From the NCBI GenBank assembly GCA_000388065.2, contig KB932207.1: a DNA stretch of 25,101 bases; one strand, written 5' to 3'. The stretch comes from Fonticula alba ATCC 38817 (Eukaryota > Protista > Nucleariida). Of the stretch, positions 1 through 24,588 are shown one piece after another (position 1 is the first letter of the stretch; every line of letters starts with the position of its first letter). Made by a program: the position numbers and the translations under genes. A model generated the notes under the pieces. That model was given only the letters and a program-made list of their open reading frames with translations, searched no databases and was not told where the DNA came from.

Positions 1-7
1 GTTCGTC

Positions 8-350
8 GGCCTAACTGGTGCTTCGGCTATACTTCCGTATACTCTTCGACACACAGCTGCTAAGGCTTTCGCTCTCAGGAGGCTCTCAACGAGAGTCCCC
101 CTTTTTGACCTTTGGGCTCGGTCAGGGGTTGGAACTGAGAACCCCCGCGGCTGGGCCCGCCCACCCGCGTATCTCCGTCCTCGGTCGAGCGTTTATGCCG
201 CTCGGCCTCGGCGGCCACCTGGCTGTTGTTCTACCCCGCATTCCTCTCCGAGGAATGCTGTTCTGGGATGCTATCATTCCCACGATGTAACACGTGTGGC
301 AATTCACTCACGTGTTGCTTCATCTATCGTTTACATGGGGATTCCACTAC
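8..350 (+). ncRNA. Candidate structured non-coding RNA, possibly RNase MRP-like (may extend left of the window)
   Basis: Eight stem-loops read by eye: 8-67 (long, internal loops), 78-100, 106-124, 125-145, 146-169, 183-207 (9 bp), 238-258 (perfect 9 bp), 287-318 (10 bp). Several G-U pairs work only on +. GAGAGTCCCC (91-100) resembles MRP CR-I and can pair with GGGGATTC (337-344). The canonical GGGGCU of CR-V and a GARAR loop are missing. Confidence 0.3.
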
Positions 351-692
351 AATTAACACACGAGCAGACGGACACCCACACCCACACACGAGCACACGGA
401 CACACGGACAGACACGAGCATATAGCATCATGCTCACTTACATACAGACCTCCATGCGCACCCCCCCCCCCCTGCCAGCCACATACCGGCCCTGCCTCAC
501 TGCCGAGCAAGGACTCCCGAACGGAACGGACCACGGACAGAGCAGGATACCCGCCTCTTCCCCGGCCACTCGCAAAATGAAGAGGGCAGGCGTTTGTACA
601 TTTACGCAATACAAAGGAGAAAGCCAACGAGAGGGAGGAAACTGAGAGGGGAATATATGTGAGGGGAGGGGAAAAGGCAGGCCAGATGGGTG

Positions 693-2110
693 TCACTTTT
701 TCGACGACGAAACCGGCCGGCTGGACACCGACTGCCGGGCACCCTTGCCGGAGGCCGGGGCGCGCGAAGACTGGCCGGCCGGCCCGCGCGAGGACGGCGC
801 CGGGGCACTTCCACCATCGGCCGGCGGTGCGGCCGGCTCGCCATCCTGATGCATGTCAGTGTCGAAATCCAGCTCGTACAGGGAGTCCACATCCGGGTCG
901 TCGTCCTGCGGATCGGCAGCAGCACCCTTGCCGGTGGTCGACGACGAGGGCTGAGACGACAGGAGCGACACCCCGGCCGGGGGCATCTGGCTGAAGTCCA
1001 TCACAGCCGGCTCCGGCGGAGGACCGCCAGCACGCGGGCCGCCCCGCGGGACGAAGTCCTCCGGCGAGAGGCTGGCCTCGGCCAAGACAATGATGTTCTG
1101 CGGCTGCGAGGCATTCATGACGATCGGCTGTGGCCGGGAGGCCGGGAGGGCTGTGGCCGGGGCCGCGGTCTTCAACCCGGCCAGCGACGGATACAGGGGC
1201 TCCTCCAGGCTTCGGAGCTCCGAGGCATGGGCCAGATTCTGCTCGGAGAAGGCGATCACCGTCCCGGCACCGAGCTTGCTGGCCAGCGTCGCGGAGGGCG
1301 CCTGCGGGTCGTCCCCCGGGGCAAAGGCCCCGCCGCCATGGTGGCCACCAAGCCCGGGGCCACCATCGGCACCGCCAACGCCACTGCCTCCCGCCGAGGG
1401 GGTGAACACAATCGACGACAGGGGATCGGCAAACTCATTGTCCCCGAAGGAGGCCATCATCCCGCCCGACAGGCTGTTCGAGCTGAAGTCCGACATGAGC
1501 AACTCATCCGCGTCAAATTCCTCATCGGCATCGTGGATGTGATCGAAGTCCCCATCGGCGTCCTTCGGCCCGGCGCCCGCGGCAGAGGGGCCCCCGGCCG
1601 CGGCTCGGGCCTGTTGCTTGGCCGCGCGCATGCGGGCCAGGCGCTCCTGCCGGACGCGCTCCGTCGCCTCATTCGGGTCGACGGCCACCTGGCGGTAGTC
1701 GTACTCCGGATTTTGCCCGGGGAGGAAGCGCGGGGCGGCCATATCACCGCCGCCGCCGCCGCCACGGAGGTGCTGCTCGGCCTCGTCCTCCGAGTCGGCC
1801 CAAGAGTCATCCCCGGGGCCGAGGCTCGCCCCGCCGCCCAGGCGGCCGCCCGAAAGCCCGGCCACGGCCACCGGCACATGGTCCGCCAACAGGGCGGCCA
1901 GCCCCTCCACCATGCCGGAGGAGTAGGCCCCAACGCCGGAGGCCGAGGCTGCTGTGATGGCGTCCCGGCTCCAGACCGACGCATGGTCCCGGGCCACGGC
2001 CACCGTGTATCGGACATGCTCCAGCGCATCGGACAGCGAGCCGCGCATGGCTGTTCCCGAGGGGATGTGCTGCGAGTCGCCCAGCAGCATGGCCGCCGCA
2101 TCGAGGGTGG
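693..2110 (-). CDS. BCAS3: BCAS3-like exon 6: acidic/low-complexity C-terminal tail
   Basis: Acceptor ATGCAG|CC at 2111 (phase 1, matches the donor). Open to TGA at 695-693 in ORF 693..2615. Confidence 0.8.
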
Positions 2111-5100
2111 CTGCATGGTCACAGCGCAACCCGATGCCCGCATCCAGGCGGTCGCGCGGGGGGGGGGGGGGGGGGGGAAAAAACACCAAAGGCCAGGGGC
2201 AGTGAAAGTCCCCACCATTGGGCGAGCAAAGGGCCGGGAGGGAGGGCCGACACACGGCCACATGCATGCGCAGGAGCCCGTGCGCGTGTGCGTGTGTGTG
2301 TGCGTGTGGCCGGGCCGAGGGGACCATGCGTACCATCGTCAATCGTCTCGAAGTCATCGGTGTCCGAGTCGGAGTCGGCGCCAGCGGTGGAATGCTGCAT
2401 GTCGGGCGAATCGTCGGCCAGCCTGCCGGGCACCGACCGCGAGCCTGGGCGAAGCAGCGGCGGCGAGGCGCCCCCGGCCACGGTGCCACTGGTGCCGACC
2501 CCCGGGCCGGCCGCCTGGAAAGATACCTGCGGCCGGGTGTGCGGGATATGCGTGGTGGCCGTGCGGTTGAAGCTCGGGATCCCGGGGACATTGTGACGCG
2601 AGGGAAGAGGCCCAAGGGCCAGGCCGCCGGCCTCCGAGGAGGACAGCGACATCGACGGCTGGCCGTAGTACTGGAAGAGGAAGCTCGGATGGCGCCAAAG
2701 GGGCGGCGGGAGCCCCGGGCTCGGGGAGAAGGGCGGCAGCAGCAGGTGCGACCGCCAGACCGTGGCCGAGCTATCCACCGCCTCCGGGGTCAGCAGGGAC
2801 CCGGAAGAAGAGCCACCGGCCGGTGGCGTGGCCCCGGCGGCAGGGCCGCCGCTCGCGGCCCCGGCCAGCACACTCTCCGAGCTCCCCCCGGGCGAGGACC
2901 CGGGCGAGCCGTCGGGCGTGGACCGACCCCCGGGACTGCTGGGGGCCGGGGCCACGGCGCTGCCCACCGGCGTCGACATGGCCAGGAGATTCATCGGCAG
3001 CGGATACCGGTAGAAGGGCAGCTGGTCCGACGCCGGGACCGCATGGCGGAAGTACTCCACACAGCTGACATGCAGGGATTCCTCCAAACCGGCGGGAACC
3101 GGCGAGCCAGATGACCCGCCCGGCCCGGCGGCGCCCCCGTGGCCCGATGGCGGGGAGGAATTCCCCGACCCGCCGGGGCCGGCGCCCGCCGGCAGGCCAA
3201 ACTCATGCGCCAGGAAGTCCGAGCTGCTGGACGGGTGTGCTCCCGACCCGACGGGCAGGCGCCCGACGCCCCCCGCAGCAGCGGGGTCATCCAGGGAGAT
3301 GCCGCCCGCACCGGCGGAACGGCCGCCCCCGCCGGACCCGGACAGCCCGGGCCCGGGCCCGGCCCCAGCCCCGGTGCCCGTGCCCTGGGCATTGGTCACA
3401 AAGGCCGGCAGGAAGTTGCTGGCCCCGGCGGCCGAGGCGGCCGCGGCGGTGGCCTCAACCGCGGCCGAGGCCATGCGCGAGGCCGCCGCCGCGGCATTCC
3501 GCCCACGCGACACACGCGACTCCGGGATCAGTCGCGCGTACAGCAGCGGCCCGGGGGAGTTCGGGCCGGAGCCCGCCAAGCCGGCCGCATTGAAGTAGTA
3601 CAGGGCCTGGGTCGGGCCGTGCACCGGGCCGATGTATTCGAAGCCGGACTCCGGGTGCAGCCCGGCCGGGCCGCCGCCGGTGGAGCCACCGCCACCCGGG
3701 CCCCCGGCCGACCCACCACCCGGGCCACGCCCATGGGTCACCTCCAGGCCGCCGGCCTCATTGGTGGTGTAGTAGAGCCCCGGCTGGGCTGGGGCCGGGG
3801 AAACCAGGGCACTGGGGAACATGAAGACCGACATGGAGGACCGGAAGCCCTGGAGACGATCGCCAGAGCCACCGGGGCCGGCTCCAGCCGACTCGGCCTG
3901 CGGATCGTGCAAGCCACCGAGGCCACCGGCCCCGGCCCCGGCCCCGGCCCCGGCGCCCGGAGCCCGGCCAGCCGGGGCCGAGATCGTGTCCTTGATGCGA
4001 TAGGCCGCGCGGATGTCCACCGGCTGGCGGAGGGCATTCGGCGGCAGGTGATCGAAGAGGGACTGCTCGGTCGGGGGCCGATAGCCGGCCGGCGCGCGGA
4101 CCAGCCGGCGCAGGGTGTGCGTGTTGATGCCCACCGGGCCGCCCACCGGGGAGATGGGGAAAAAGTGCGCCGTGCCACGGTCCGAGCAGGCGACAACCCA
4201 ATTGCCGGCCGGGCTGAACTGCAAGTGCTCAATCACACACGGGGTGATGCCCCGCTGAAGGCGATACAGCAGCTCGGCCCCGCCATTGGGCCCAAGCCCG
4301 GGTGGCGATGCCCCGCCCCGAGGCCGGACCCCCGCGCCCGGGCCACCGGCCTGATGATGGTACAGGTCCGCCGCCGGGGGGGGAGGCCGGATCCGGAAGA
4401 CATGCAGCACCTTCCCGTGGGCCGGGGCCGTGACCAGCAGGGTGCCGGACGCGTCGAAGGCCATGGCGGCAATCGGCGCATCGTGATGCGCCACGAAGTG
4501 CGCAATCACACGAAGATCCTCCCCGGAGGTGGCATCACCACTGCCACCGGGACTCTGCAGAGACCGGATCATGACGATGCCCGGCTCGGCGGCGGCCTTC
4601 CCGGACCCGGGGCCGCCGGTGCCAGCAGCACTGGACCCCATTCCGGCCCCGGGGCCCGCCCCGCCAGGCCCCGTGCCAAGGACCCCGGTCGCCCCGAGGG
4701 AGGATCCCCCGGCCACAGGGGCCGAGCAGCCCGCCCCGCCGGCCATGCCGTCCGAACAGTCAACCCCGCCACCGGGGGCCATGGACCCGGGACCGACGCC
4801 ACCGGGGCCGCCACCAACGCCCGGCAGCCCATGCGGCGTGCTCCGGGGCGAGGCCCCATTGAAGACATCAGACCAATTGGTGCCGGCCGAGCTGGGGGAA
4901 GGGGAAGGGCCGGTGTCACCGGTGTAGGCGGACTTCCGACCGAGCCAGCGCCAGCCGGCAGCCACCTGCGAGCTGATGGCCTGCACGGCGGCCGACGCGG
5001 TGGCCGCCGCAATGGAAGCCGTCTTATGCAGGGAGTTTGACGATTGGCCATAGGAGCCGGACCTGGCGGAGAGAGGCGCGAGGACGCGGGGAAGGGGGAA

Positions 5101-7315
5101 GAAAAGAGCCGGAGGAAGGGACAAAAGGAGGAGGGAAAAAAACGATGGTCAGAGGGGGAGGGAGGGGGGGGGGGGGCATAGGCAGAAGGTGCGCTCGCAC
5201 GAGGGCATCGAAGGGACGCACATCATGACGGGGCTCTGGTCGGTCCAGGTCCGCGACGCGTAGGCCATCCAGCTGGCGCCCAGGGCGGCCACAACCCCGC
5301 GCGAGCCCACCACCGACGGCCGGCAGTCCGTCAGTTCGAAGGAAGGCTGGTATGCGTCGAAGTTGCGCAGATCCCCGGCCGACGCAGGCCCGACCGGCCC
5401 GGCTGCCGGCAGGTCCGCCAGGTGGGACTTCTGGCTGGGACCCCACAGGCGGAAGGTGCTGATCTTGGTCCGGCCCAAGAGCGCCAGGATCTGCGAGTTG
5501 GACAGGGCTTCGCGAATGTGGTTGTCATCCGAGGCGTAGGGGCCGCCAGCGGGCCCGGACCCGACCACGGCTGCCAGCTGCGAGGAGTTGATGTGCAGCA
5601 TGCATACAATGGCCGTCGTACGAAGCGAGATAATGCGCATCTCCCGGACACCGGTGGTCTGGGAGAAGGAACTGAAGAGCGGGTCGGGACGCGTGTCAGA
5701 AAGTGAACCAATGCGGGGGGGGGGGGGGGGGGCAATACACCCAGTGATGGTGGCGGCGGGAGCCCCGAGGGGAATGGCAGAACAAGAAGAGGAGAGAAAG
5801 GCCGTACACAACAAGAGCATGGGGGCGGTCGGAGTTGGCCAACTCGGCGGGCGTCATGTTGCTGGGATTCTCGATGAGCTGCCAGCCGGGGAACGTTCAG
5901 GGGTTAACAGACAGACAGAGAGATGGGGGGGGGGCGGGTGGCGAAACAGGCGAAACAGGCGAAACAGGCGAAACAGGCGAAACAGGCGAAACAGGAAGCA
6001 TGGGCACAGCAGGCACGCACCCGGAACACCAGGACCGGCAGAGTGGACTCGGCGGAAAAGATGCGACGCGCGGCGCGGGGATCATCGACATCCCACAGCT
6101 CGTAGCGGTCGGTCATGCCGAGACACAGGCACAGAGGCCCCTTGGACCCGGGGCTGGGCTTGGACAGCTGGGGGAGGTGCTCAAAGCGGGCATAGATCAC
6201 CCGGCTGGCGGCGCTGGTCCCGGCCGCGGCGCCGGTCGACCCGGCGAAGCCCACCCCCGCCCCGACCCCGGTGGCCTTGGTGATGCGTGACATGAAGTCA
6301 TGCACCGTGGAGGCCGAGGAGCCATATGCCACCTCCAGGAAGGACCGATTGGAGAGATTGGCCCGGATGGCCGTCGTCACCGGGGGAATGTGCAGCATCG
6401 ACATGTCCGGCTGCGGTGGCGGCCGAACCGGCGTGCCGGGCAGGATGGCCGGCACCCCGCGCGGCCCGGGGACCGGCTCGCTCGCACCGACCCCCGGGAA
6501 GCCAAAGGCCCCGCCATCCGCCGAGGGGGGGTATTGCGGCAAGGCATCCGACGGGGTGCCCGCCGTGGGCCTCATGTCGGGGATATTTTCCAGATGCGAG
6601 AAGTCCATGCTGCCGGAGGAAGTGGCCCTGGCTGGCGGAGTAGCCGGCCGGAAGAGGTGCTGCCTGTTGGGGAAGAGGCCATCGCCGGCCGGGCCGGTCT
6701 CCGGGTCCTCTTCGGAGGAAGAAGTCGAGGGGGAGGACCCGGTCGCATGGGGGGCCGCGGTGACCGGCCCGACAACCGAGTCGTCGGCCGTCCCATCAAG
6801 TCGACCACCGCTGGCCGAGGCCATGACCGGGGGCGGGGGCGAGGTCGGGGGCGTCCCGCCAGACGCCGCGCCCCTTGCATATGTGTCAAAGACAGCGGCT
6901 CCCGGCACCGGGGAGCCCGGCGTGGCCGGGGCCGCCGGCGATTCCAGGTCAATGTCCAGCAGCTGGCCGGTGCTGCCGCTGCCGGCCGGAGTGCCACCAT
7001 GCTCGGTGGCAGCCGGCCCGGGCGACATGAAATCCCCATACGGGAAGTGGCTCAGCCCCGGGTGAGTGGACCGCCCAAGATCCAGGCTGACCAGACCGTC
7101 ATTCAGGAAGGAACCCCGCGAGTCATCCTCATCATCCTCATCATGGCGATCATGGTCGTGGCCTTCGGACGAGCCGCCCGGCCGGAAGCGCCCATGCTCG
7201 GCCACCAGCGAAGGCGGCGAGTCAAAGGGCAAGAATGATGGGGTGTCAGACGCAGGGGGGGGAGGACCATCGTCCAGGGGCGACAAGTCCAGGAGGGGAT
7301 ACTGAGCCGACAGGG

Positions 7316-7370
<55 letters not shown>

Positions 7371-7668
7371 CGGGACCGCCACCGGAGCCTCGATCTTCGG
7401 CTCGGGAATCGACTCCGGCTCGGGAATCGACTCCGGCTCGGGAATCGACTCCGTCCCCGAGACAGACTGCGACTTGGACTTGGCTTTGCCCCCGGACGCT
7501 GGCGAGGCCTTGGCCTGAGATGTGGGCTCGGGCTCGGGCCCAGGGGCAGGCGTGGACTCGGTCTTAGGTTCAGCCTTGGACTTAGACTTGGACTTGGACT
7601 TTGTCTTAGACTTGGGCTCGGGCTCGGGCTCGGGTTCAGACTTAAGTTCAGGCTCAGGCTCGGGCTCA

Positions 7669-7729
<61 letters not shown>

Positions 7730-9173
7730 ACTTAAGTTCAGGCTCGGGCTCGGGCTCAGACTTAAGTTCAGGCTCGGGCTCGGGCTCGGGCTTAAGTTCA
7801 GGCTCAGGCTCAAATGTAGGCTCAACAGGCGACACGGACTTCGAGCTGACAGCAGGCTCCGATACCGGGACAGGCCCCGGCTCGGCAACAGGCTCAGGGT
7901 CCGGAGGGCTGGTGGCCTTTTTCTTCTTGCGCTTTTTGCTCTCCTCCCTGCGAGGGGAGGACTTTTCCTTGCGAGGCGTGGGCTCCTCCTTGGCTGCCGG
8001 AGGCTCGGCGGAGATGACAGACTGCTTTTTCTCCTCGCGCTGGATGGACTCCGCCGAGGAGGACGAGACGATCTCCGAGGAGGAAGCAGATGAGGAAGGA
8101 GGGGACATGGCGGCGTTGGGGCCGGGCAACTGATTGGCCGGCCGCATGGAGGGCGCCGGCGAAGGCGGCGAAGGCGGCGATCGAAGCTCCAGCTCGGCGG
8201 CTGGAAGTGGCGAGAGATCCAGCAGGAGACCAGGCGAGGCCCCGGCGGCTGGAGGCCCGGCGGCTGAAGCACCAGCGGACACGGGGGCCGGGGTCAAGGA
8301 GCTGGCAGTCCCTGGCGTGTCGCTGGGCGGCGTGCCCGGCGGGGTGGAGATGGCCTCGACCTTGGGACCGGCGGCAGGCTCAATGCTGACCTCGCCCGGC
8401 TCGGCGAGCCGGGACTCGGCCTCGCCGCCACCCTCACCAGCATCAGAACTGGCATTGGCATGGGCAGTGTCATTGTTGCCATCGTCCGCAGCAATGGTCG
8501 CAGTGGCATCAACATCGTCGGCACCAACATCGAGTCGAGCATCGGGCTTGGTGGTGGTGCAATTGCCCTGGGGCGTGGCCTCGACAGAAGCCGCACGATC
8601 AACCACTTCGGCATCGGCCTCGAGTGGGGGCTCCGGGTTGTCATCTGCGTCAAAGGAGAAGAGAGTCAATGTCACGACTCAGACGGGGGGAGGCAGAAAA
8701 AATGAGAAAAAAAAAGGCATCCACATACCCTGTTGATCCGACTTCGAGGCAGCTGCCGAGGCGACAGCCGACCAGCTTAGCGGAGCGACTGGGGTGTCTG
8801 CCGGCTGTTCCCTGGCCGGACTCTTGGAGGCCTTCGCCTGGTCCGCCTTGACCGGTGAGGAGGCCGCCCGAGTGCCGCTTTGGGAGGTCGGTGAGGGGGA
8901 AGATGACCGATCGGCCTCGGCAGGAGCCTCGGTGGCAACCGAAGTGACCGGACCGCCACCGGGCAGCAGGTCGCTCGAGGAGCTGGGGCTCGGCTCGGGT
9001 GAATTATCGGGGCTTGGCGCGGCAGAGCCCTTGGGGCTTGGCCCGGTGGAGTTGCCGGCTGAAGAGCCAGCAGAACGCGTGGGCACATTGGCATTGGCGC
9101 CCCGGCCCCTGCGAGACGGGGAGCCACCACCGCCACCTTCCGACAGTAGGTCCGAAAGGTTTTTGATGCCCAT
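693..9173 (-). CDS. BCAS3: BCAS3-family (plant ATG18f-h-like) PROPPIN-related WD40 autophagy protein, ~2578 aa, with very long low-complexity extensions; whole gene span
   Basis: Exons 9173-8729, 8644-6021, 5878-5808, 5671-5222, 5062-2334, 2110-693. All introns are GT-AG, all phases match, total 7737 nt = 2579 codons including TGA. BCAS3 motifs: [73 protein letters not shown]...[56 protein letters not shown]. Confidence 0.88.
2334..5062 (-). CDS. BCAS3: BCAS3-like exon 5: lipid-binding propeller blades and BCAS3 C-terminal domain motifs
   Basis: Lies in ORF 2119..5124. Acceptor GCCAG|G at 5063, donor G|GTACGC at 2333. Contains the [13 protein letters not shown] and [10 protein letters not shown] motifs. 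Confidence 0.9.
5222..5671 (-). CDS. BCAS3: BCAS3-like exon 4 (WD40 blades)
   Basis: Acceptor CTTCAG|T at 5672, donor AT|GTGCGT at 5221, both phase 2. Encodes [14 protein letters not shown] and [10 protein letters not shown]. Confidence 0.85.
5808..5878 (-). CDS. BCAS3: BCAS3-like exon 3 (71 nt; [24 protein letters not shown]); not in the ORF track
   Basis: Acceptor GGCAG| at 5879 (phase 0), donor GT|GTACGG at 5807 (phase 2). It bridges the frames of exons 2 and 4, and RPHALVV matches BCAS3 RPllavv. Confidence 0.75.
5941..5994. repeat. Perfect tandem 9-mer (GCGAAACAG)x6 inside BCAS3 intron 2
   Basis: Units start at 5941, 5950, 5959, 5968, 5977 and 5986. Confidence 0.95.
6021..8644 (-). CDS. 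BCAS3: BCAS3-like exon 2: long disordered N-terminal region plus the first propeller elements
   Basis: Lies in ORF 5904..8675. Ends YARFEHL...[14 protein letters not shown]...VLVFR followed by donor GTGCGT at 6020 (phase 0). Confidence 0.85.
7317..7367 (-). repeat. Pure (CAG)17 encoding a poly-Gln tract
   Basis: (CTG)n on the + strand, in frame in BCAS3 exon 2. Confidence 0.9.
7399..7452 (-). repeat. 18-nt coding tandem repeat x3 (IPEPES)
   Basis: CTCGGGAATCGACTCCGG-type unit repeated three times on +. Confidence 0.85.
7560..7815 (-). repeat. Coding hexamer array: (Glu-Pro)n with interspersed ELK(S/P), followed by (Lys-Ser)n
   Basis: (GGCTCG/GGCTCA)n with recurring CTTAAG on +; the translation matches the ORF track. 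Confidence 0.9.
8729..9173 (-). CDS. BCAS3: BCAS3-like exon 1 ([10 protein letters not shown]...SDQQ)
   Basis: ATG at 9173. Donor G|GTATGT at 8728 (phase 1) matches acceptor GACGCAG|AT at 8645. Confidence 0.75.
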
Positions 9174-12588: not shown

Positions 12589-15500
12589 CTGCGAGCCCGG
12601 GAGAGACGGGGGGGGGGGGGGGAGGGGGGGGGAACATGGTCAGTGAAGCTCTCCGACACGGCGGCGGGAGGGGTGGTGGAGGAACGCACTGGGCGCCGCG
12701 ATGGCCAGCGTCCAGAAAACCATGATGCTAGCGGCGGAAATCAAAAGATACATGACCAACTGTGGGAGATGTCCCGGCCGCGCCCAGCCAAAGGCCCGCC
12801 AACGGTGCAGAGCACGAGTGCATGGGTGAGTGGCGACCCTCAGAAGGGGGGGCAGCACAGGGCAGAAGTGAAAGAATGCACAGCCGGCCTCCGGGCCCTG
12901 GCGAGGTGGCCGGTGCGCCGCGTGCGCGCGCGCGCGAGCGCGTACCTTGGTCTTAAGCAGAAGGCGCGACCCCGGTCGGCCGAGAGCGCCCGACGCATCC
13001 GGGAACAAGTACCCCTCCAGGCCGAGACTGATGGCCGTCAGGTAGGAAGCCAGGAGGCTGGAATAGGACACAATGTGCTGGACGATGCTCCCATGCCAGA
13101 AGCGCCGGTCAACCGCAGGGGCAGCACCATGGCCGGCCGAGGACCGGTCGGCGCCGGTGCTCTCCTGCAAGAAGCCCAGCTTCCAGGCAAGGGTGTCAAC
13201 AAGGAGGGCGGATGCCGGCGGCGAGGCCATGCCGATGGGGGCCTGCTTGTCGGCCGCACCGGCTGCCTGAGCCGCCGCCACCGCGGCACGCTCCTGGCGG
13301 TACCCCTCACGGGCACGGGTGAGCACCGTTTGCACGGCGGCCGTCACCCGGGCGCTGGCGCCTCGGCCCACCGGGGTAAAGAGCAGGCCCGAGACCGCCC
13401 ACCAGATGGCCGCCAGCTGCAGGGCCAGCTGGACAATCGGCCCAAGGCCTGGCGACCAGGCAGGCGGGGCCACGGTCGACAGGCGCAACAGACACTGGCT
13501 CCATAGACACTCGGCTTCCGGATGCTGGCCCGGCCAGGAAAGCAGCGGCAGGGATACGGCCGCCGGGCCGCCAGCGCGCAGCGCCCCGGACCGCATGTCC
13601 CCAGGGGCCGGCCCCGAGGCCAGCGGGCCAAAGAGCGACAACCCCACGCCGCCCAGATCGAAGGAGGGCGGAGACCAGGCCCGATCGAGCAGCCCCGGCA
13701 GGAGCAGGCGCCGGCCGGCCGCCGTGAGCGCCGTGGAAACCGGCCGACCGGTGACACCCGCGCGCGAGTTGGTGCCGGCCGGTGCCACCCGCGTGCCATT
13801 GCCCCCGAGCAGCACCCCCCCGGTGTCGAGGAGGTGCTCAAGATACAGGCGTCCAGAGTCGACGAGGCCCAGCAACACACGCAGGCCGAAGGTCAGCGAC
13901 CAAAGGACGAGGCTGCCCAACAGCAGGCTGGACACCGTGATGGCAAGCAGATGCAAGCATGATAGGACCTCCTGCTTGAGGGGCAGCTCAAGCTGAAAGA
14001 GGCAAGCGTGAACCGGAGGCAGGAAGAGAGAGGAGCGAGAGTGAGGGAGTGAGAGTGAGGGGGGGAGAGCGGGGGAGGGGGAGAGCGGGGGGGGGGAGGG
14101 GAGGGCAAGGGAGCGAGAGTGAGAGAGAGAGATAGAGAGGGAAAGAGAGCAAGTAGGTGAGAATCGGCCGAAGAGAAGAGGGAGAAGGGGAATGCATCCA
14201 GACAGGTGAAGAGAGGGGGGGGGGTAGAGGTGGGGGGTGGGAGGGGAAGAGGGAGGGGGGGGGAGAGAGGGAGGGGGGGAGAGCGGGGGAGGGGGAGGGA
14301 GGGCAAGGGAGCGAGAGTGAGAGAGAGAGATAGAGAGGGAAAGAGAGCAAGTAGGTGAGAATCGGCCGAAGAGAAGAGGGAGAAGGGGAATGCATCCAGA
14401 CAGGTGAAGAGAGGGGGGGGGGAGGCCGACACGCACGCGATTGAGAATGAGCTCGCCAATGTGGTTGGACGCCACGAAGGCCAGCCCGCGGCGTGGACCA
14501 GGGTCTAGGTTGGGAGGGGGAATCGCCAGCCCGGCAACCGGGCGATCCGGGTCCTCCAACACGCCGTCGCCGCCGGCGCCCAGTAAATCATCCACCATGG
14601 GGGTGTCTGACACGCGGCCGGAGGGGGACCCCTCGGCAGGGGCAAGGCCCAGCAGCAGGTGGAAGTATCGCTGGGCCGAGGGCCGCGGGGTGAGCCGGGC
14701 CAAATGCCGGCGCAGGTAGTCCACCAGCCGAAGCAGCAGGAACCCCAAGCACCAGGTGAACACCAGGCTCACGATGGCCGTCTCATACTCGGTCGACAGC
14801 TGACACGATCCATCGAGATCGGTGCCGGCCAGGGTGGTCAGCAGACTGGGCCGAAGGAGTGCAAGCGGCCCGGCGCCCTGGAAGTTGAAGAGGGCTCCAC
14901 ACCGGCCGGTCACCGTCAAGGGGACCGCCCCGCGCGTGGTGGCCAGCGAGGCGGCCAGCGAGGCCGATTCGCGCAGAACCGCCCCGGTCGCCTCGCCGGA
15001 GCTCGCACTCCCCACGCTGAAGACCCCACGCAGGAGGGAAGTGGAGACATAGTCCCAGAAGAGCTGGCGCACATTGGCCGCCCGCGGGAGGGTGGCCCCG
15101 GTCGTGAGCATGGCCGCCCCGGTGCCAGGCAGGACGCTTAGCGGTGCCACAAACAGGCTCAGCAGCAGGCGAGCCATCTTGCCCGTGAAGATGGGCGCCA
15201 GTAGGAGGTGAAGAATCACCAGGATGAGGAACTGCATGGCGCCAGGGCCCCGGGAATGGGCGCATCAGAGGGCGAGAGGGATGGAAGGGGGGCAGGGGCG
15301 AGAGAGGGAGAGGGACGGTAGCAGGGCGAGAAAGACGGGTCAGGGAGGGTCGAGAGGTGGCGAGCGAGCGCGAGGGGNNNNNNNNNNNNNNNNNNNNNNN
15401 NNNNGACGCGCGTGGCAGGAGGCAGAAGCAAGAGAAGGGCGCAGATGGAGGAGGGATTCCGGCCATCCGCTGGGCGGGCGGCACGCACCTTGCCAAGGAA

Positions 15501-17017: not shown

Positions 17018-17855
17018 CAGCCAATAGAACGGGACCAGGAAAGGGGTGATAGTTGAGCAAACAGCAGGAACAAAAAGAGCCTCCGAGAGAGAATGAGAGA
17101 GAGAGAGAGAAAGAAAGAGCCAGGGAAGCCACGCGTACCGCCAAGCCACACTCCCCAATGACCCAAGGCAGGAAGCCGAAGGATCCGAGAAAGACCGAAT
17201 TGAACATCAACACCCAGAGGATGTTCTCCAGCATGGAACGGAAGGACCCGCCAAAGCCAAGCAGCTCTTTCAGGAGCTTGAGGAAGGAATTCTCGGTTTC
17301 CCCGCGTCCTGTGCCGGCCTCGGGCTCCGTCCCGCGTGACAGCAACCCATGCAGCGAGTCATTCAGGTTATTGATGGCGGCAATCAGCTCATTGCGACGT
17401 TCTTCCTGGGCAGCGCCATGGTTCAGTCCCGGGGGCAGGCCCCCCATGCCAGGAAGCCCGGCTGCCAGGGCCGGCTCCCCACCGCCAAGCGCCACCCCGG
17501 GCGGGGCACCGAAATCCATGCCGGCCCCACCGCCAAAGAGCCCCCCGGCCATGGGCATCAACCCCGGGAGGGGAAGATTGCCCGCGGCCTCGAGAGGCGG
17601 ATCCCCCATGGCCATGGAGTGGATGGTGCCATCTAGCAGGCCGCCACTCGGCCCGGGGGAGGGAGACCTCCGGAGGAGATGCCCCCCGACACCGCCCAGC
17701 GGCGACGCACGGCCATAGCTGGCACTCCCCCGGCGGGAGGACCGGCCGGAGCCCCCGATCCCGACGCCCAGCAGTGGGCTCGACGCGAGGCCATAGTAAT
17801 TGCCCGAATCGGCCCACTGGCCTCCGGGGGAAGCCATGTCATTGCTGTTGCTGTG

Positions 17856-19871: not shown

Positions 19872-22800
19872 ATCGGGGATGGTGGCGGAGGGGGGGAAAA
19901 CAGGCGAAGAGAGGTAGAGTGCTGCGTTACCTGCAGCAGGGGGGGTGGTGGTGGTGGCCAGTCGGGAAGTCGGGCTGCCTTCCGCATGAGCAGCCAGGGG
20001 CATGGGCGACGCGGCGCTCGAGGAACTCGGCGACAGCTGGCCCAGGACCAGGGTCGAGGCCATCGGCGAATAGAGACTGTGGGAGCCACGGCGATGGGGA
20101 GACATGGCGAACATGCTGCCCGACCGGGGCCGGCTGTGCGGGCTGCCCGCAGCCCCGGCCGGGTACCCCGTCGGCGATGGCGACGGACTGCTCGGGGTGC
20201 CCGGGCTCAGGTAGGCGGACATGCTGCTGGGGGATCCGCGGCTCAAACCAGGCGAGGGGGACCGGCCCCCGGTGGACCCGGTGTGACCGCCGCCATACGG
20301 ATGACCCATGCCGCCGCCGCCGCCGCCGCCGCCGCCGATGGGCGCCGCCAGATGAGGAGACCCGGCGGGCTGGGCGCCGCCGAGAAACCCCGGCGACAGG
20401 GGCATCGGATGGATGGGCGATCGGGCGCCAGTGGCCGGCCCGCCGAAGCCCAGGCTGTCAAGAGACCCGGTGACCGCCATCGGGGCCGATCCACGCCGCG
20501 AGGAGGACCGCGACGAAGCGAACTCCGACGTGTAGCGCTCGCTCTCGCGACGCCCCATGACCGAGCGCGGCCGCATGCCGGTCAACAGTGGCGACGAGTC
20601 GTCGCTCATGTCATTGGCGATGATGCTGACTCGGCGTTGGATTTGCTGCTGCACCGAGAGCGATGTGCTGCGCTGGTGCCCGCGCCCCGGGGGGTGCGGA
20701 AACACATGTCCCGAGGACAGATGCTGGTAAGAAAGGTACCCCCCGGCCGCCGGGCCGCCGGGCGAAGAGGGCGCGTAAGGGTTGCCATGCAGCTGAACCG
20801 GCGAAAGGGGCGTCCGCAGGCCGGGCGGCGGCGACCCGGTCAAGTGCTCCATTCCCGTGGCAGCCAAGCCGGTGCCATTGGTGTCGGCCGCGAATGGGCC
20901 CTCATCACCCGGTCCCGGGGACACCGCCCGCTGGGCAGCCACCATCCCCGGGGAGTAGTACCCCATGTCGGGCACCGACGAGGGCCGAAGGTAATCCGCC
21001 GAAGGGGACCGCCGCCGGACGAACCCCCCCGGCATCGAAGCACTGCCGCCACTGAATGGGGCATCTGGAGGCCCGCCATCTGTCAAGTCGATCAATGACA
21101 TGCTGCCGGTGAAACGCACGCCGGGGCTGGGAATGGATCTGATCAGGCCGCCGGATGGAGGGCGCCCGGCCTCCGTCGAGGCAGTCAGGCCCGCGGCCGG
21201 TTCGGCCGCCGCGGCATCCGCAGCAGCATCTCGGCCGTCGGCGGGGGTAGCAGCTGCAGCTGCAGGTGCGCCGGCGGCGGCGGCGGCGGCAGCGGTGGCG
21301 GCGGCGGCAGCACTGGCCGCCGCTGTGGCACTCTCCGCGGCCGCCGCATCGCTGTTATTCACCACGCGAGTACGGATCTCGGTCAGGCCCATCAGGGCCG
21401 ACATGTTGAAGGCGTACAGCAGGATCCCGGCCACGCAATCGGCAAGGAGTGCCAAGAGCCAGCCAAGGGGCTGGATCAGCCGCGGAAACCGCGACCGGTC
21501 GGCCGCAACCACGGCCGCGTCCGGTGCCGCCGCGGTATCCGGCGTCTCCGGCGGGCTGGCTGGCCGGTCGTCGGCCGAGCCACCAGTCGCCAGGGTGTCA
21601 CGCACGCCCGGCGGCAGGAGGGCCGCGCGTCCGGGCCCGGCCACATGCGTCCGTAGGAGCTGCCGGCTGGGCGTGCTGCCGCCCTCAAGCGAGATGGCCG
21701 TTCGCCAAGTGCTCAGGGGGAAGAAGTGGAAGGCCTCAGCCCCGAGGGCCGAGTGCACGCTCAGGCTCTCGATCAGCGCCTCGATGTCCGGGCTTTGGGG
21801 GAAAGTCCCGGCGGAAGGTCCGCCTGGCGGGTGGTCGATCGACGGGCCGCCGGGTGTCCGGCCAGGCGCCCCGGCCGGCGGGCATGCCTGGCCACAGACC
21901 TCCAGCAGGATGCGCGCCGGTGACAGGCCCGAGGCGCGGGCCTCCCCGGCCAGGGGGAACAGAGCCGTGCGAGAGAGCGATGTCGACAAGGCAATATCCC
22001 CGAAGGTCACCGGCCCAAGAATGGTGGCCGAATCCAACAACACACTGGACCCAGGTGTGGTGCCGGAATCCAAGCGCACAAGACACCGGCCCGGCTGGCT
22101 AAGGAGAACCTCCTGCGGCTCGGCCGAAGGGCCGGCTATCGAGGCCGACAGACCGCCCGGCGGGGATACAGCCACCGGGACGGGGGATCGGCTGTGGTCA
22201 TCACCCGCCCGGCCGCCGAGCGGCGTGAAGGCACCAATGTGCGTGAGCCAGCCCGTCGGATCGAGGGTCCGGCTGAAGAGATCCGCCAAGGGGGGGTTGA
22301 GATCCGGTCCGACAAAGGGGTCCGGCTTGGTCGGGGCCATGCTCGGGAACTGGGCCACCAGCAGCCAGGGCGCCTGCCCGAAGTACATGTACCAGCAGAG
22401 GCGCACTGTCAGCGGGACGATGATCAGCCAAGTGAAGATGACTACCGTCGGCCGAGTGACCGTCTGCACGAGAGATTGGAAGCCGGCCTTCAGCAGGCTG
22501 CTGGTGGAAATCTCGCGCTCCTGGCTGTGAAAGACTGGGTGCGTGTGCGTGTGCGTGTGCGTGTGCGTGTGCGTGCATGATCGGGGGGAGGGAGGGGCGG
22601 TCAGCGAGGGTGGGTGTTTTTGCAAACCCCAAGAGAGGGGCAAAAAAAAAAAAGAAAGAAGAGCGTACCGGGCTGGTACACGATCTCATGGTTGCACACT
22701 TCGCAGGTCCTGCAGAAGGAAAGGCGGGGAGCCCAGTTGGGGTAGGAGGGGGTAAGTTGGAAGAAAAAGCAGAAAGGCCACGAGGAGGGGGGGGAGAAAG

Positions 22801-23516
22801 GAGGGATGTGGCCAGCACCGGCCGAAAGTGCGTACTTGGAGTTCCGCAGAGCAACCCATGTCAGGAGACTGGGTGCAGTGTCACAGTCGATGGCACACAT
22901 GCACACGCAATAACAAGAAGACAGGCAGATCCGCATGTACGCGAAGGGGTGGTGGTGAGAGGCAAGGCGAGAGAGGGAAAGAAAGGACGAAGGATCGAGG
23001 GACCGAAGGATCGAAAGGAGGAACGAAAGAAAGAGAGATGGTGGAATGGCACACATCAGCAGAGGAACAGCGGAAAGGGAAGTCAGTGGCGGATGGATCG
23101 CGGGGTCGTCGGGGGGGGGGGGGGGGCACACCCCCCGGCGAGGGGGGGGGGGGAGGCAAAGGGGCGCAACGGACACAAAAAAACAAAGGGAAACGGACAA
23201 TGCTGCCGGAGCACATGCAAGGCTTAACAAAGGTGTTGTAGTAGCCGATGATGCTCATGCGGGTGGCATCGGACACCCGGCCGCCACTGAGAACCGGTGT
23301 GGCGGCCGTGCCGAAGAGCGAGGAGATCCGATGGAGCTGGGCCGGTCCCCAAGGGGAGCTGGTTGAGGCGTCAGCCAGGCCCTCGCCCAGGGCGCCATCC
23401 TCGCCCCAGAGCTGGGCCATGGGATTGGACGACCGACAGATCCGACACTCGGCCTCATTCTGATCAGGTCCCGGATGGTGGGCCGGCTCGGACGACGGAC
23501 CGGTCTCCATGGTCAT
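10859..23516 (-). CDS. MARCHF6: Divergent MARCHF6/Doa10(SSM4)-family multipass ER membrane RING-CH E3 ubiquitin ligase, ~3600 aa; whole gene span
   Basis: Exons 23516-23199, [unresolved 3n+2-nt piece], 22868-22836, 22709-22669, 22534-17139, 16886-15489, 15231-14437, 13992-12946, 12759-12690, 12588-10859. Family motifs occur in the correct order: CRIC...KPCMCSGSI, LLTW...CEVCNH, VIFTWLIIVPLT (TM1), LLADCVAG (TM2), LLGFGGS...LENILWVLMFNSVF...FLPWVIG, VGYVL, K|FLILVILHLLLAPIFTG, AAP|IAVGR, RYRRYFIGWHVLEN (compare MARCHF6 DKYLVGQRLVNY). Confidence 0.85.
12690..12759 (-). CDS. MARCHF6: MARCHF6-like 70-nt exon (one TM helix, LVMYLLISAASIMVFWTLAIAAP)
   Basis: Acceptor CACAG| at 12760, donor A|GTGCGT at 12689. 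Joins to give AAP-I-AVGR, like MARCHF6 LP-V-FAGR. Confidence 0.8.
12946..13992 (-). CDS. MARCHF6: MARCHF6-like exon (LELPLKQEV...LLKTK)
   Basis: Acceptor TTTCAG| at 13993, donor AAG|GTACGC at 12945, both phase 0. Confidence 0.8.
14101..14422. repeat. Direct duplication inside MARCHF6 intron 14436-13993 (~120-nt identical core, 198-nt period)
   Basis: GAGGGCAAGG...GAATCGGCCG...GACAGGTGAAGAGAGGG starts at 14101 and again at 14299. Confidence 0.9.
14437..15231 (-). CDS. MARCHF6: MARCHF6-like exon with TD-domain TM5/TM6 equivalents
   Basis: Acceptor ATGCAG|TTC at 15232, donor CGC|GTGCGT at 14436, both phase 0. Confidence 0.82.
15378..15404. other. Assembly gap (27 N) inside an intron
   Basis: N run. 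Confidence 1.
15489..16886 (-). CDS. MARCHF6: MARCHF6-like exon (LTSALLSG...VGYVL...FLGK)
   Basis: Acceptor CCTAG| at 16887, donor AAG|GTGCGT at 15488, both phase 0. Confidence 0.82.
16936..17017. repeat. Compound microsatellite (GC)n(AG)20(TG)n in intron 17138-16887
   Basis: Read directly from the sequence. Confidence 0.95.
17139..22534 (-). CDS. MARCHF6: MARCHF6-like giant exon (5396 nt): TM1, expanded luminal loop, TM2, giant loop, TM3
   Basis: Lies in ORF 16887..22643. Acceptor CCCAG|TC at 22535 (phase 1), donor GCG|GTACGC at 17138 (phase 0). Confidence 0.85.
22539..22575. repeat. (GTGC/GTGCGT)n simple repeat at an intron 3' end
   Basis: Read directly from the sequence. Confidence 0.85.
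22669..22709 (-). CDS. MARCHF6: MARCHF6-like 41-nt exon (TCEVCNHEIVYQP)
   Basis: Acceptor CTGCAG|G at 22710, donor G|GTACGC at 22668. Encodes the last CxxC of the RING-CH. Confidence 0.82.
22836..22868 (-). CDS. MARCHF6: MARCHF6-like 33-nt exon (LLTWVALRNSK)
   Basis: Acceptor CCCAG|T at 22869, donor AA|GTACGC at 22835 (phase 2/2). Contains the conserved RING-CH Trp. Confidence 0.75.
23199..23516 (-). CDS. MARCHF6: MARCHF6-like exon with the first half of the RING-CH domain
   Basis: MTMETG...ECRICR...KPCMCSGSI followed by donor GTCCGT at 23198 (phase 0). Confidence 0.8.
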
Positions 23517-24237: not shown

Positions 24238-24588
24238 NNNNNNNNNNNNNNNNNNNNNNNNNNNNNNNNNNNNNNNNNNNNNNNNNNNNNNNNNNNNNNN
24301 NNNNNNNNNNNNNNNNNNNNNNNNNNNNNNNNNNNNNNNNNNNNNNNNNNNNNNNNNNNNNNNNNNNNNNNNNNNNNNNNNNNNNNNNNNNNNNNNNNNN
24401 NNNNNNNNNNNNNNNNNNNNNNNNNNNNNNNNNNNNNNNNNNNNNNNNNNNNNNNNNNNNNNNNNNNNNNNNNNNNNNNNNNNNNNNNNNNNNNNNNNNN
24501 NNNNNNNNNNNNNNNNNNNNNNNNNNNNNNNNNNNNNNNNNNNNNNNNNNNNNNNNNNNNNNNNNNNNNNNNNNNNNNNNNNNNNNNN
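24238..24588. other. Assembly gap (351 N)
   Basis: N run. Confidence 1.

Follow-up and report, generated by a model that had tools for sequence, protein, structure and literature searches.

Close to the left end of the window, by which we mean the whole 25,101-nt stretch of DNA analysed here, positions 125-352 fold into a compact structure that is favoured on the + strand and that may represent, with somewhat less than an even chance in our estimate, an orphan structured RNA domain read from that strand. The original prediction had described a densely folded element of about 340 nt occupying all of 8-350 and carrying a partial RNase MRP signature. Our results indicate that dense folding does exist but covers less than had been described, being located in 125-352 with the + strand favoured, and that the MRP signature is not supported, as it is compatible with chance and fails the tests that define this RNA family. 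The segments concerned are:

125..237, + strand: Domain A, a four-way junction on which the minimum free energy (MFE) and centroid folds agree almost exactly
238..258, + strand: Domain B, a perfect 9-bp hairpin, GCAUUCCUC-UCC-GAGGAAUGC (inverted repeat I5, 100% complementary)
259..351, + strand: Domain C, a 93-nt irregular hairpin of about 30 bp in the MFE/centroid fold
1..124, no strand assigned: left part with stem-loops 8-67, 78-100 and 106-124, delimited by split folds and cut by the window edge
356..419, no strand assigned: degenerate CA-rich tandem repeats with a 16- to 28-nt unit (TRF array 356-406; direct-repeat families D1 and D2)

When folded against dinucleotide shuffles on both strands, positions 1-350 gave z-scores of -3.4 (+) and -4.5 (-), and this stretch was the most negative of 69 consecutive 350-nt segments on either strand, over a background with a mean near -0.5 and a standard deviation of 1.4. 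Sliding 120-nt segments and split folds were used to locate the signal, and the excess proved to be confined to 125-352; dense folding across all of 8-350, as originally claimed, does not hold, because 1-124 on the + strand folds no better than shuffles, with a z of +0.4 and a diffuse ensemble. The + strand of 125-352, on the other hand, has an MFE of -101 kcal/mol and a z of -6.0 to -6.7 (-6.0 with 200 shuffles, 0 of 200 being as good), an ensemble diversity of 18.6 vs 54.5 +/- 16.6 in shuffles, of which 0.7% were as low, and an MFE structure nearly identical to the centroid, and the - strand of the same segment reaches a z of -3.6 with an ordinary ensemble diversity. The + strand is ahead of the - strand here by about 2.4 z units and 10 kcal/mol, a lead owed to eight G-U pairs that become A-C mismatches on the other strand. 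The suggestion that G-U pairs favour the + strand is accordingly upheld for 125-352, where the MFE structures contain 8 such pairs on + vs 3 on -, but not for 1-124, where they contain 4 and 3 and it is the - strand that folds better; the + strand preference is moderate and limited to 125-352. In 1-124 the strand preference is in fact the opposite, the - strand scoring a z of -3.4 to -3.5 with a well-defined fold (MFE frequency 0.136), and this left part could belong to a separate - strand unit running off the window edge.

All eight of the stem-loops originally listed can be drawn where they had been placed, and each folds on its own. The strongest are 146-169 (-14.5 kcal/mol), 183-207 (9 bp including one G-U, -15.0 kcal/mol), 238-258 (9 bp, perfect, -12.3 kcal/mol) and 287-318 (10 bp, -14.7 kcal/mol), and an inverted-repeat search recovers the arms of 183-207, 238-258 and 284-321. 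Domain A is closed by a 10-bp stem (125-129/233-237 and 131-135/228-232, with 130 bulged) that holds three hairpins, 137-175 (with its apex at 146-169), 183-207 and 210-227. Domain B, whose energy is the same on each strand, adjoins domains A and C without a linker. The apex of Domain C is 287-318, with arms AACACGUG/CACGUGUU, and its 3' strand uses the CR-V-like GGGGAUUCC in local pairing with 264-272 (341-346 with 264-269). On the + strand, the 120-nt segments 121-240 and 161-280 have z-scores of -2.8 and -4.6, respectively; further right, 201-320 reaches -5.5 on + vs -2.35 on -, and 241-360 reaches -3.35 vs -0.96. The fold of 125-352 stops exactly where the tandem repeats start, and these repeats (356..419) form the right edge of the non-repetitive element. 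As the original prediction had it, the low-complexity style of the rest of the window is absent from the element, since TRF reports no tandem repeat in 1-355 but 38 rows for the rest of the window, with the first array beginning at 356, and 1-355 is the only repeat-free part of the window's left end.

The DNA of the window is that of a GC-rich, intron-containing eukaryote in a draft assembly. The G+C content lies between 61 and 76% in every 1-kb interval but the last, which contains an N gap, and the gaps (15378-15404 and 24238-24588), together with long runs among the many G or C homopolymers (e.g. 460-472 and 23105-23125), indicate that the assembly is a draft; frame breaks such as that between the overlapping ORFs 693-2615 and 2119-5124 may stem from introns or from sequencing errors. 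The tail-to-tail arrangement with BCAS3 that had been proposed is correct as far as orientation goes, and involves the following features:

693..5124, - strand: BCAS3-like gene (Pfam BCAS3_WD40, GC3 0.80-0.82, GGTACGC sites)
2328-2334, - strand: likely 5' site of a BCAS3 intron, G/GTACGC (motif search)

The BCAS3_WD40 domain lies in the - strand ORF 2119-5124 (Pfam, E 2.5e-15), and the adjoining - strand ORF 693-2615, in which codon bias is equally strong (GC3 0.80), is likely the last exon of the gene, with its stop at 693-695. Because the BCAS3-like gene is on the - strand and ends there, a + strand element in 1-350 would be convergent with it. This was the sole convincing Pfam domain among the 18 long ORFs of the window; a search with the WD40 exon returned one distant metazoan-like fragment among 5.8 billion proteins, and the whole BCAS3 ORF used as a protein query gave zero matches, and hence no syntenic locus. 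An exact-match query of public assemblies with one ORF of the window gave no record either. The heptamer GGTACGC is found four times, always on the - strand (2328-2334, 12940-12946, 17133-17139 and 22663-22669; 1.39 expected), and at 2328 and 22663 it coincides with reading-frame breaks, so that G/GTACGC looks like a 5' splice site of this organism. By eye, what appears to be a RING-CH (MARCH-like) zinc-finger gene, apparently intron-split, is recognised at about 22650-23510 (-), with the pieces CRIC...PCMCSGS, LTWVALRNSK and CEVCNHEI in different frames and low-complexity DNA between them; the single ORFs of that region gave no Pfam match. Elsewhere, a 198-nt unit is repeated in 1.8 copies (97% identity) within purine-rich DNA at 14059-14422.

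Two other explanations for the element were considered and set aside. Protein coding was rejected for 1-720, as no frame has a Pfam match and GC3 is too low, at 0.50-0.64 in the element vs 0.78-0.82 for the genes of the window; in + frame 2 there is an open stretch from 2 to 577, with a GC3 of 0.50 and a low-complexity product. A generic 3'-end feature is unlikely as well, since the 350-nt segments just below the stops of other long - strand ORFs have z-scores between -1.9 and +1.7.

Shuffle z-scores in this genome have a heavy tail. Across the window, 125-352 ranks third of 208 among 228-nt segments; the first rank belongs to a 30-nt-period repeat array (6.8 copies, 7608-7811, with the strongest folding z in the window, -7.5 on the + strand) and the second to the antisense strand of the BCAS3 coding segment 3317-3544, which carries the inverted repeat CGGCCGCGG/CCGCGGCCG and which, with 200 shuffles, has z-scores of -4.45 (+) and -3.43 (-) and a well-defined fold. 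That a coding segment attains such a score leaves the function of 125-352 unproven, and means that z-scores for folding have to be judged against an empirical background in this genome. It is in fact almost as likely as the orphan RNA domain that the segment has no function at the RNA level and is intergenic DNA with a cluster of short palindromes, which could be sites recognised by dimeric regulators of a neighbouring gene (candidates are CACGTG at 291-296 and 309-314, and TTCC-N7-GGAA within 238-258) or a product of chance in a GC-rich genome with heavy-tailed folding. A DNA-level origin is made viable by the finding that both strands beat shuffles and that all genes recognised in the window are on the - strand, owing to which 1-690 could also be a spacer before a further - strand gene to the left. 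In addition, DNA palindromes, perfect or nearly so, make up the strongest stems, and about half of the signal of 125-352 comes from near-perfect palindromes, which fold equally well on both strands. The lead of the + strand through its eight G-U pairs argues the other way, however, as do two stems that are not simple palindromes, namely the long-range stem closing Domain A and the lower one in Domain C. Moreover, the window contains 17 perfect inverted repeats with arms of at least 8 bp; just two fall in 125-352, and while most of the others consist almost entirely of G and C, these two have a mixed composition.

The copy-number question raised by the original prediction was answered for the 25-kb window, which is what our search covered, and in which 1-700 has no second copy. 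This bears on a possible origin as the 3' terminus of a transposable element or of a SINE-like retroposon, with 356-419 as its simple-repeat tail and the window starting inside it. Some non-LTR elements have 3' ends of this kind, with a structured region and then a simple repeat, and here the structured region is followed directly by a 16-nt-period tandem repeat; + frame 2 is, besides, open from the window edge onwards, and the base composition of the element is unlike that of its surroundings. We nonetheless regard such an origin as unlikely, given that neither a second copy nor a fragment is found in the 25 kb, that no frame contains a reverse-transcriptase or other Pfam domain, that the open frame has the low GC3 and low-complexity product described above, and that no tRNA-like head is present. 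Metagenome, viral and prokaryotic collections, in addition, gave no match to the element beyond chance. A metagenome scan with GAGAGTCCCC-N(217-247)-ACATGGGGAT returned 15 loci, all of them chance matches (3 of the 15 were bacterial TctC-like coding genes). The 21-mer palindrome of 238-258 is in no viral contig and is also present in two gut metagenome-assembled genomes, a Candidatus Merdimorpha (locus L017, 5046-5066) and an uncultured Flavobacteriales (locus L018, 6860-6880), where it is the tip of a 59-nt palindrome with 19-nt arms on each side; as the flanks there are unrelated to the window, the sharing of the 21-mer was taken as chance.

The case for an RNA domain in 125-352 thus combines the z of -6.0, the low ensemble diversity, the 8 vs 3 G-U pairs and domains that follow one another without linkers and end at the tandem repeats with the single copy in the window, a GC3 that is non-coding, the absence of Pfam domains and the fact that this is not a generic 3'-end feature. 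It is weakened by the fact that a single sequence is involved, by the heavy-tailed background, by the palindromes that make up about half of the signal and by the lack of an Rfam family. What the original prediction called an unannotated structured ncRNA therefore survives in part: 125-352 is compact and favours the + strand, but the extent is reduced, as 1-124 drops out. If, as we infer, 125-352 is transcribed, is read from the + strand, and has ends and a function of its own, its three abutting helical domains (the four-way junction, the perfect 9-bp hairpin and the 93-nt irregular hairpin) would form either a small ncRNA of some 230 nt, specific to the lineage, or the structured terminal portion of a longer transcript from the + strand that converges on the BCAS3-like gene. 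If functional, such a structure might serve as a rigid scaffold, either binding proteins or protecting the end of an RNA, and would not be a ribozyme of the P/MRP type. That 125-352 represents a new family of structured RNA of about 230 nt is conceivable, although we hold it to be somewhat doubtful. Should the segment turn out to be both transcribed and conserved, it would be an orphan structured RNA from a very poorly sampled lineage, a finding useful for annotation and not a surprising one. The more useful result, in our opinion, is the negative one on the MRP signature.

The published consensus used to search for the P4 helix is gaaAGuCCCC on the 5' side (CR-I) and acnnnanGGGGCUnannnu on the 3' side (CR-V), and the loosest published P4 search tolerates no more than two deviations overall, or a single broken pair (PMC1796607). 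Both motifs named in the original prediction are present in the element:

91..100, + strand: CR-I-like decamer GAGAGUCCCC, one base off gaaAGuCCCC
333..348, + strand: CR-V-like ACAUGGGGAUUCCACU, with four deviations from acnnnanGGGGCUnannnu
102..106, + strand: T5 run right after the CR-I-like motif (direct reading)

Positions 91-100 read gagAGuCCCC, and match the CR-I consensus at 9 of 10 positions, the single deviation being in an unpaired base. The exact consensus, GAAAGTCCCC, is however found at 2204-2213 (+), antisense inside the BCAS3 coding region, and the window contains 3 matches with at most one mismatch vs 5.98 expected, so that the CR-I motif alone carries little weight and the decamer at 91-100 is probably a chance match. 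As we read it, the universal CR-I pattern of P/MRP RNAs is GNAANNUC, and an A conserved in it is a G here. Positions 330-348, in turn, read uuuacauGGGGAUuccacu, with four deviations from acnnnanGGGGCUnannnu (the a, the c, a paired C changed to A, and the final a), and a scan of the window with this consensus did not recover 333-348 within two mismatches. The original prediction had already noted that CR-V contains GGGGAU and not GGGGCU. Taken together, CR-I and CR-V carry five deviations from the P4 consensus. Owing to the C to A change, G95 would lie opposite A341 if U96 were bulged, so that the G-C pair adjoining the bulge is lost; P4 is then possible only as an unbulged helix of 8 bp between 93-100 and 337-344, as had been proposed. 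An 8-bp run with the decamer is seen in 13% of shuffled downstream regions. The helix has a probability of 0.9 when exactly 1-350 is folded, and of 0.05-0.08 for 1-380, 1-450 and 1-700, where a local hairpin displaces it, and forcing it costs 2.3 kcal/mol; the P4-like helix is, in short, compatible with chance.

Searches with the Rfam models gave no RNase_MRP or RNaseP_nuc at the gathering score in the whole window, nor at E<=10 on either strand of 1-700 or 1-380; as the Rfam E-value counts 4227 families, only matches of roughly 15 bits or more are listable at that threshold. MRP RNAs have a three-base-pair P5 immediately after CR-I (PMC13184271). A 3-bp P5 next to CR-I is absent here, where CR-I runs into CUUUUUGACC, and the next junction-closing stem, of 10 bp, starts at 125, which is 24 nt away. 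No usable CR-IV (AnAGUnA or AGNNAN, 0-3 nt before the P2 3' strand) was found in 100-333, the sole AGNNA between these positions being AGGAA (251-255), which lies in the perfect hairpin 238-258 as part of its 3' arm, and inspection revealed no P2 partner of at least 6 bp. Because CR-IV is unrecognisable in some alveolates (PMC1796607), and some protists lack CR-IV or GARAR, the absence of CR-IV alone is not decisive. The absence of a GARAR pentaloop, conceded from the start, is evident from the loops themselves (CCCG, UUUAUGC, ACCU, UCC and an apical loop of 8-12 nt), and GAGAA at 137-141 is either paired (137-140 with 172-175) or in the 9-nt loop of an alternative hairpin, 125-145. The proposed P3 (8-67) does end 23 nt before CR-I, as had been pointed out; it can be drawn as a helix 8-12/63-67, an internal loop and a helix 23-32/37-49, and lies in the part of the + strand with a z of +0.4. 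A P1-like pairing of 7 bp can be formed by 1-7 and 367-373, with the window starting at position 1 and the partner, GACGGAC, lying within the repeat family. T runs terminate Pol III, and the T5 run at 102-106 is a candidate Pol III stop inside the proposed 340-nt RNA; no downstream T run occurs before 696-700.

A highly divergent RNase MRP RNA would have 8-67 as P3, 91-100 as CR-I, 125-237 as a specificity domain with a P5-like closing stem, 287-318 as P19, 333-344 as CR-V and 1-7/367-373 as P1. The order of these elements (a hairpin, a CR-I-like motif, a four-way junction, further hairpins and a CR-V-like motif) resembles P/MRP topology, the CR-I-like motif agrees with the consensus at nine positions, and the 8-bp P4-like and 7-bp P1-like helices together cost only 2.3 kcal/mol over the MFE of 1-380. 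It is because of this MRP-like order, and of the alveolates and other protists without a recognisable CR-IV or GARAR, that we keep this reading as a very small probability and do not dismiss it altogether. The claim of a divergent MRP RNA is otherwise not supported: no model matches at E<=10; P4 departs from the consensus at five positions, GGGGCU to GGGGAU among them, and loses its bulge; a conserved A of GNAANNUC, as we read that pattern, is replaced; the only CR-IV-like string sits in a perfect stem, and a GARAR pentaloop, a 3-bp P5 and a P2 are all missing; 23 nt separate the supposed P3 from CR-I, and a T5 run follows the latter; the 5' part, 1-124, has no excess structure on the + strand; the P1 partner lies in a repeat; and both motif and helix are expected by chance. 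We find it scarcely credible that the element is a functioning RNA of the P/MRP type, contributed by a poorly sampled, GC-rich eukaryotic lineage and with a core departing from an otherwise universal consensus; such an RNA would entail, with the same slight probability, an unbulged P4, a CR-V reading GGGGAU, one purine exchanged for the other in CR-I and the lack of a recognisable CR-IV. At 65-72% G+C, chance alone is expected to produce a CR-I match at nine of ten positions along with a complementary GGGG motif, and the two amount to an MRP signature only if the CR-V consensus, CR-IV and a model match are also present.

Compared with known systems, the element resembles RNase MRP RNA (RF00030; 7-2/MRP, NME1) in size, at about 340 nt as proposed, and in the succession of a hairpin, a GARAGUCCCC-type decamer, a stem-closed multi-hairpin domain, more hairpins and a GGGG motif that pairs back. 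It differs from it, in spite of these similarities, in that it has no covariance-model match, its CR-V reads GGGGAU without the upstream 'ac' and the downstream 'a', its P4 has no bulged U, and CR-IV, the GARAR loop, P5 and P2 are absent, to which the long spacer between P3 and CR-I, the internal T5 run and a 5' third that is unstable on the + strand should be added. With nuclear RNase P RNA (RF00009) the element shares a stem that, several nucleotides past the CR-I-like motif, closes a four-way junction, which in nuclear RNase P is formed by P7 with P8, P9 and P10/12; it differs in having no Rfam match, no CR-I pattern, no CR-II/III loops and no 8-nt CR-IV, and in that its third arm is a 7-bp hairpin and not a long P10-P12. 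Other candidates fared no better, as the only Rfam matches from the searches at the gathering score and at E<=10, PyrR207 and CRISPR-DR47, are noise, no tRNA or SINE head was found, and, by eye, none of a telomerase template, H/ACA and C/D boxes, an Sm site, a U1 5' end, the SRP helix-8 motifs, the CUGAGA context of a TPP riboswitch or a tRNA-like cloverleaf fits the sequence. The remaining comparison is with orphan lineage-specific ncRNAs and structured UTR domains, a class normally defined by expression or conservation; with these the element has in common that it is single-copy, non-coding and non-repetitive, and that it adopts a compact multi-domain fold favouring one strand.
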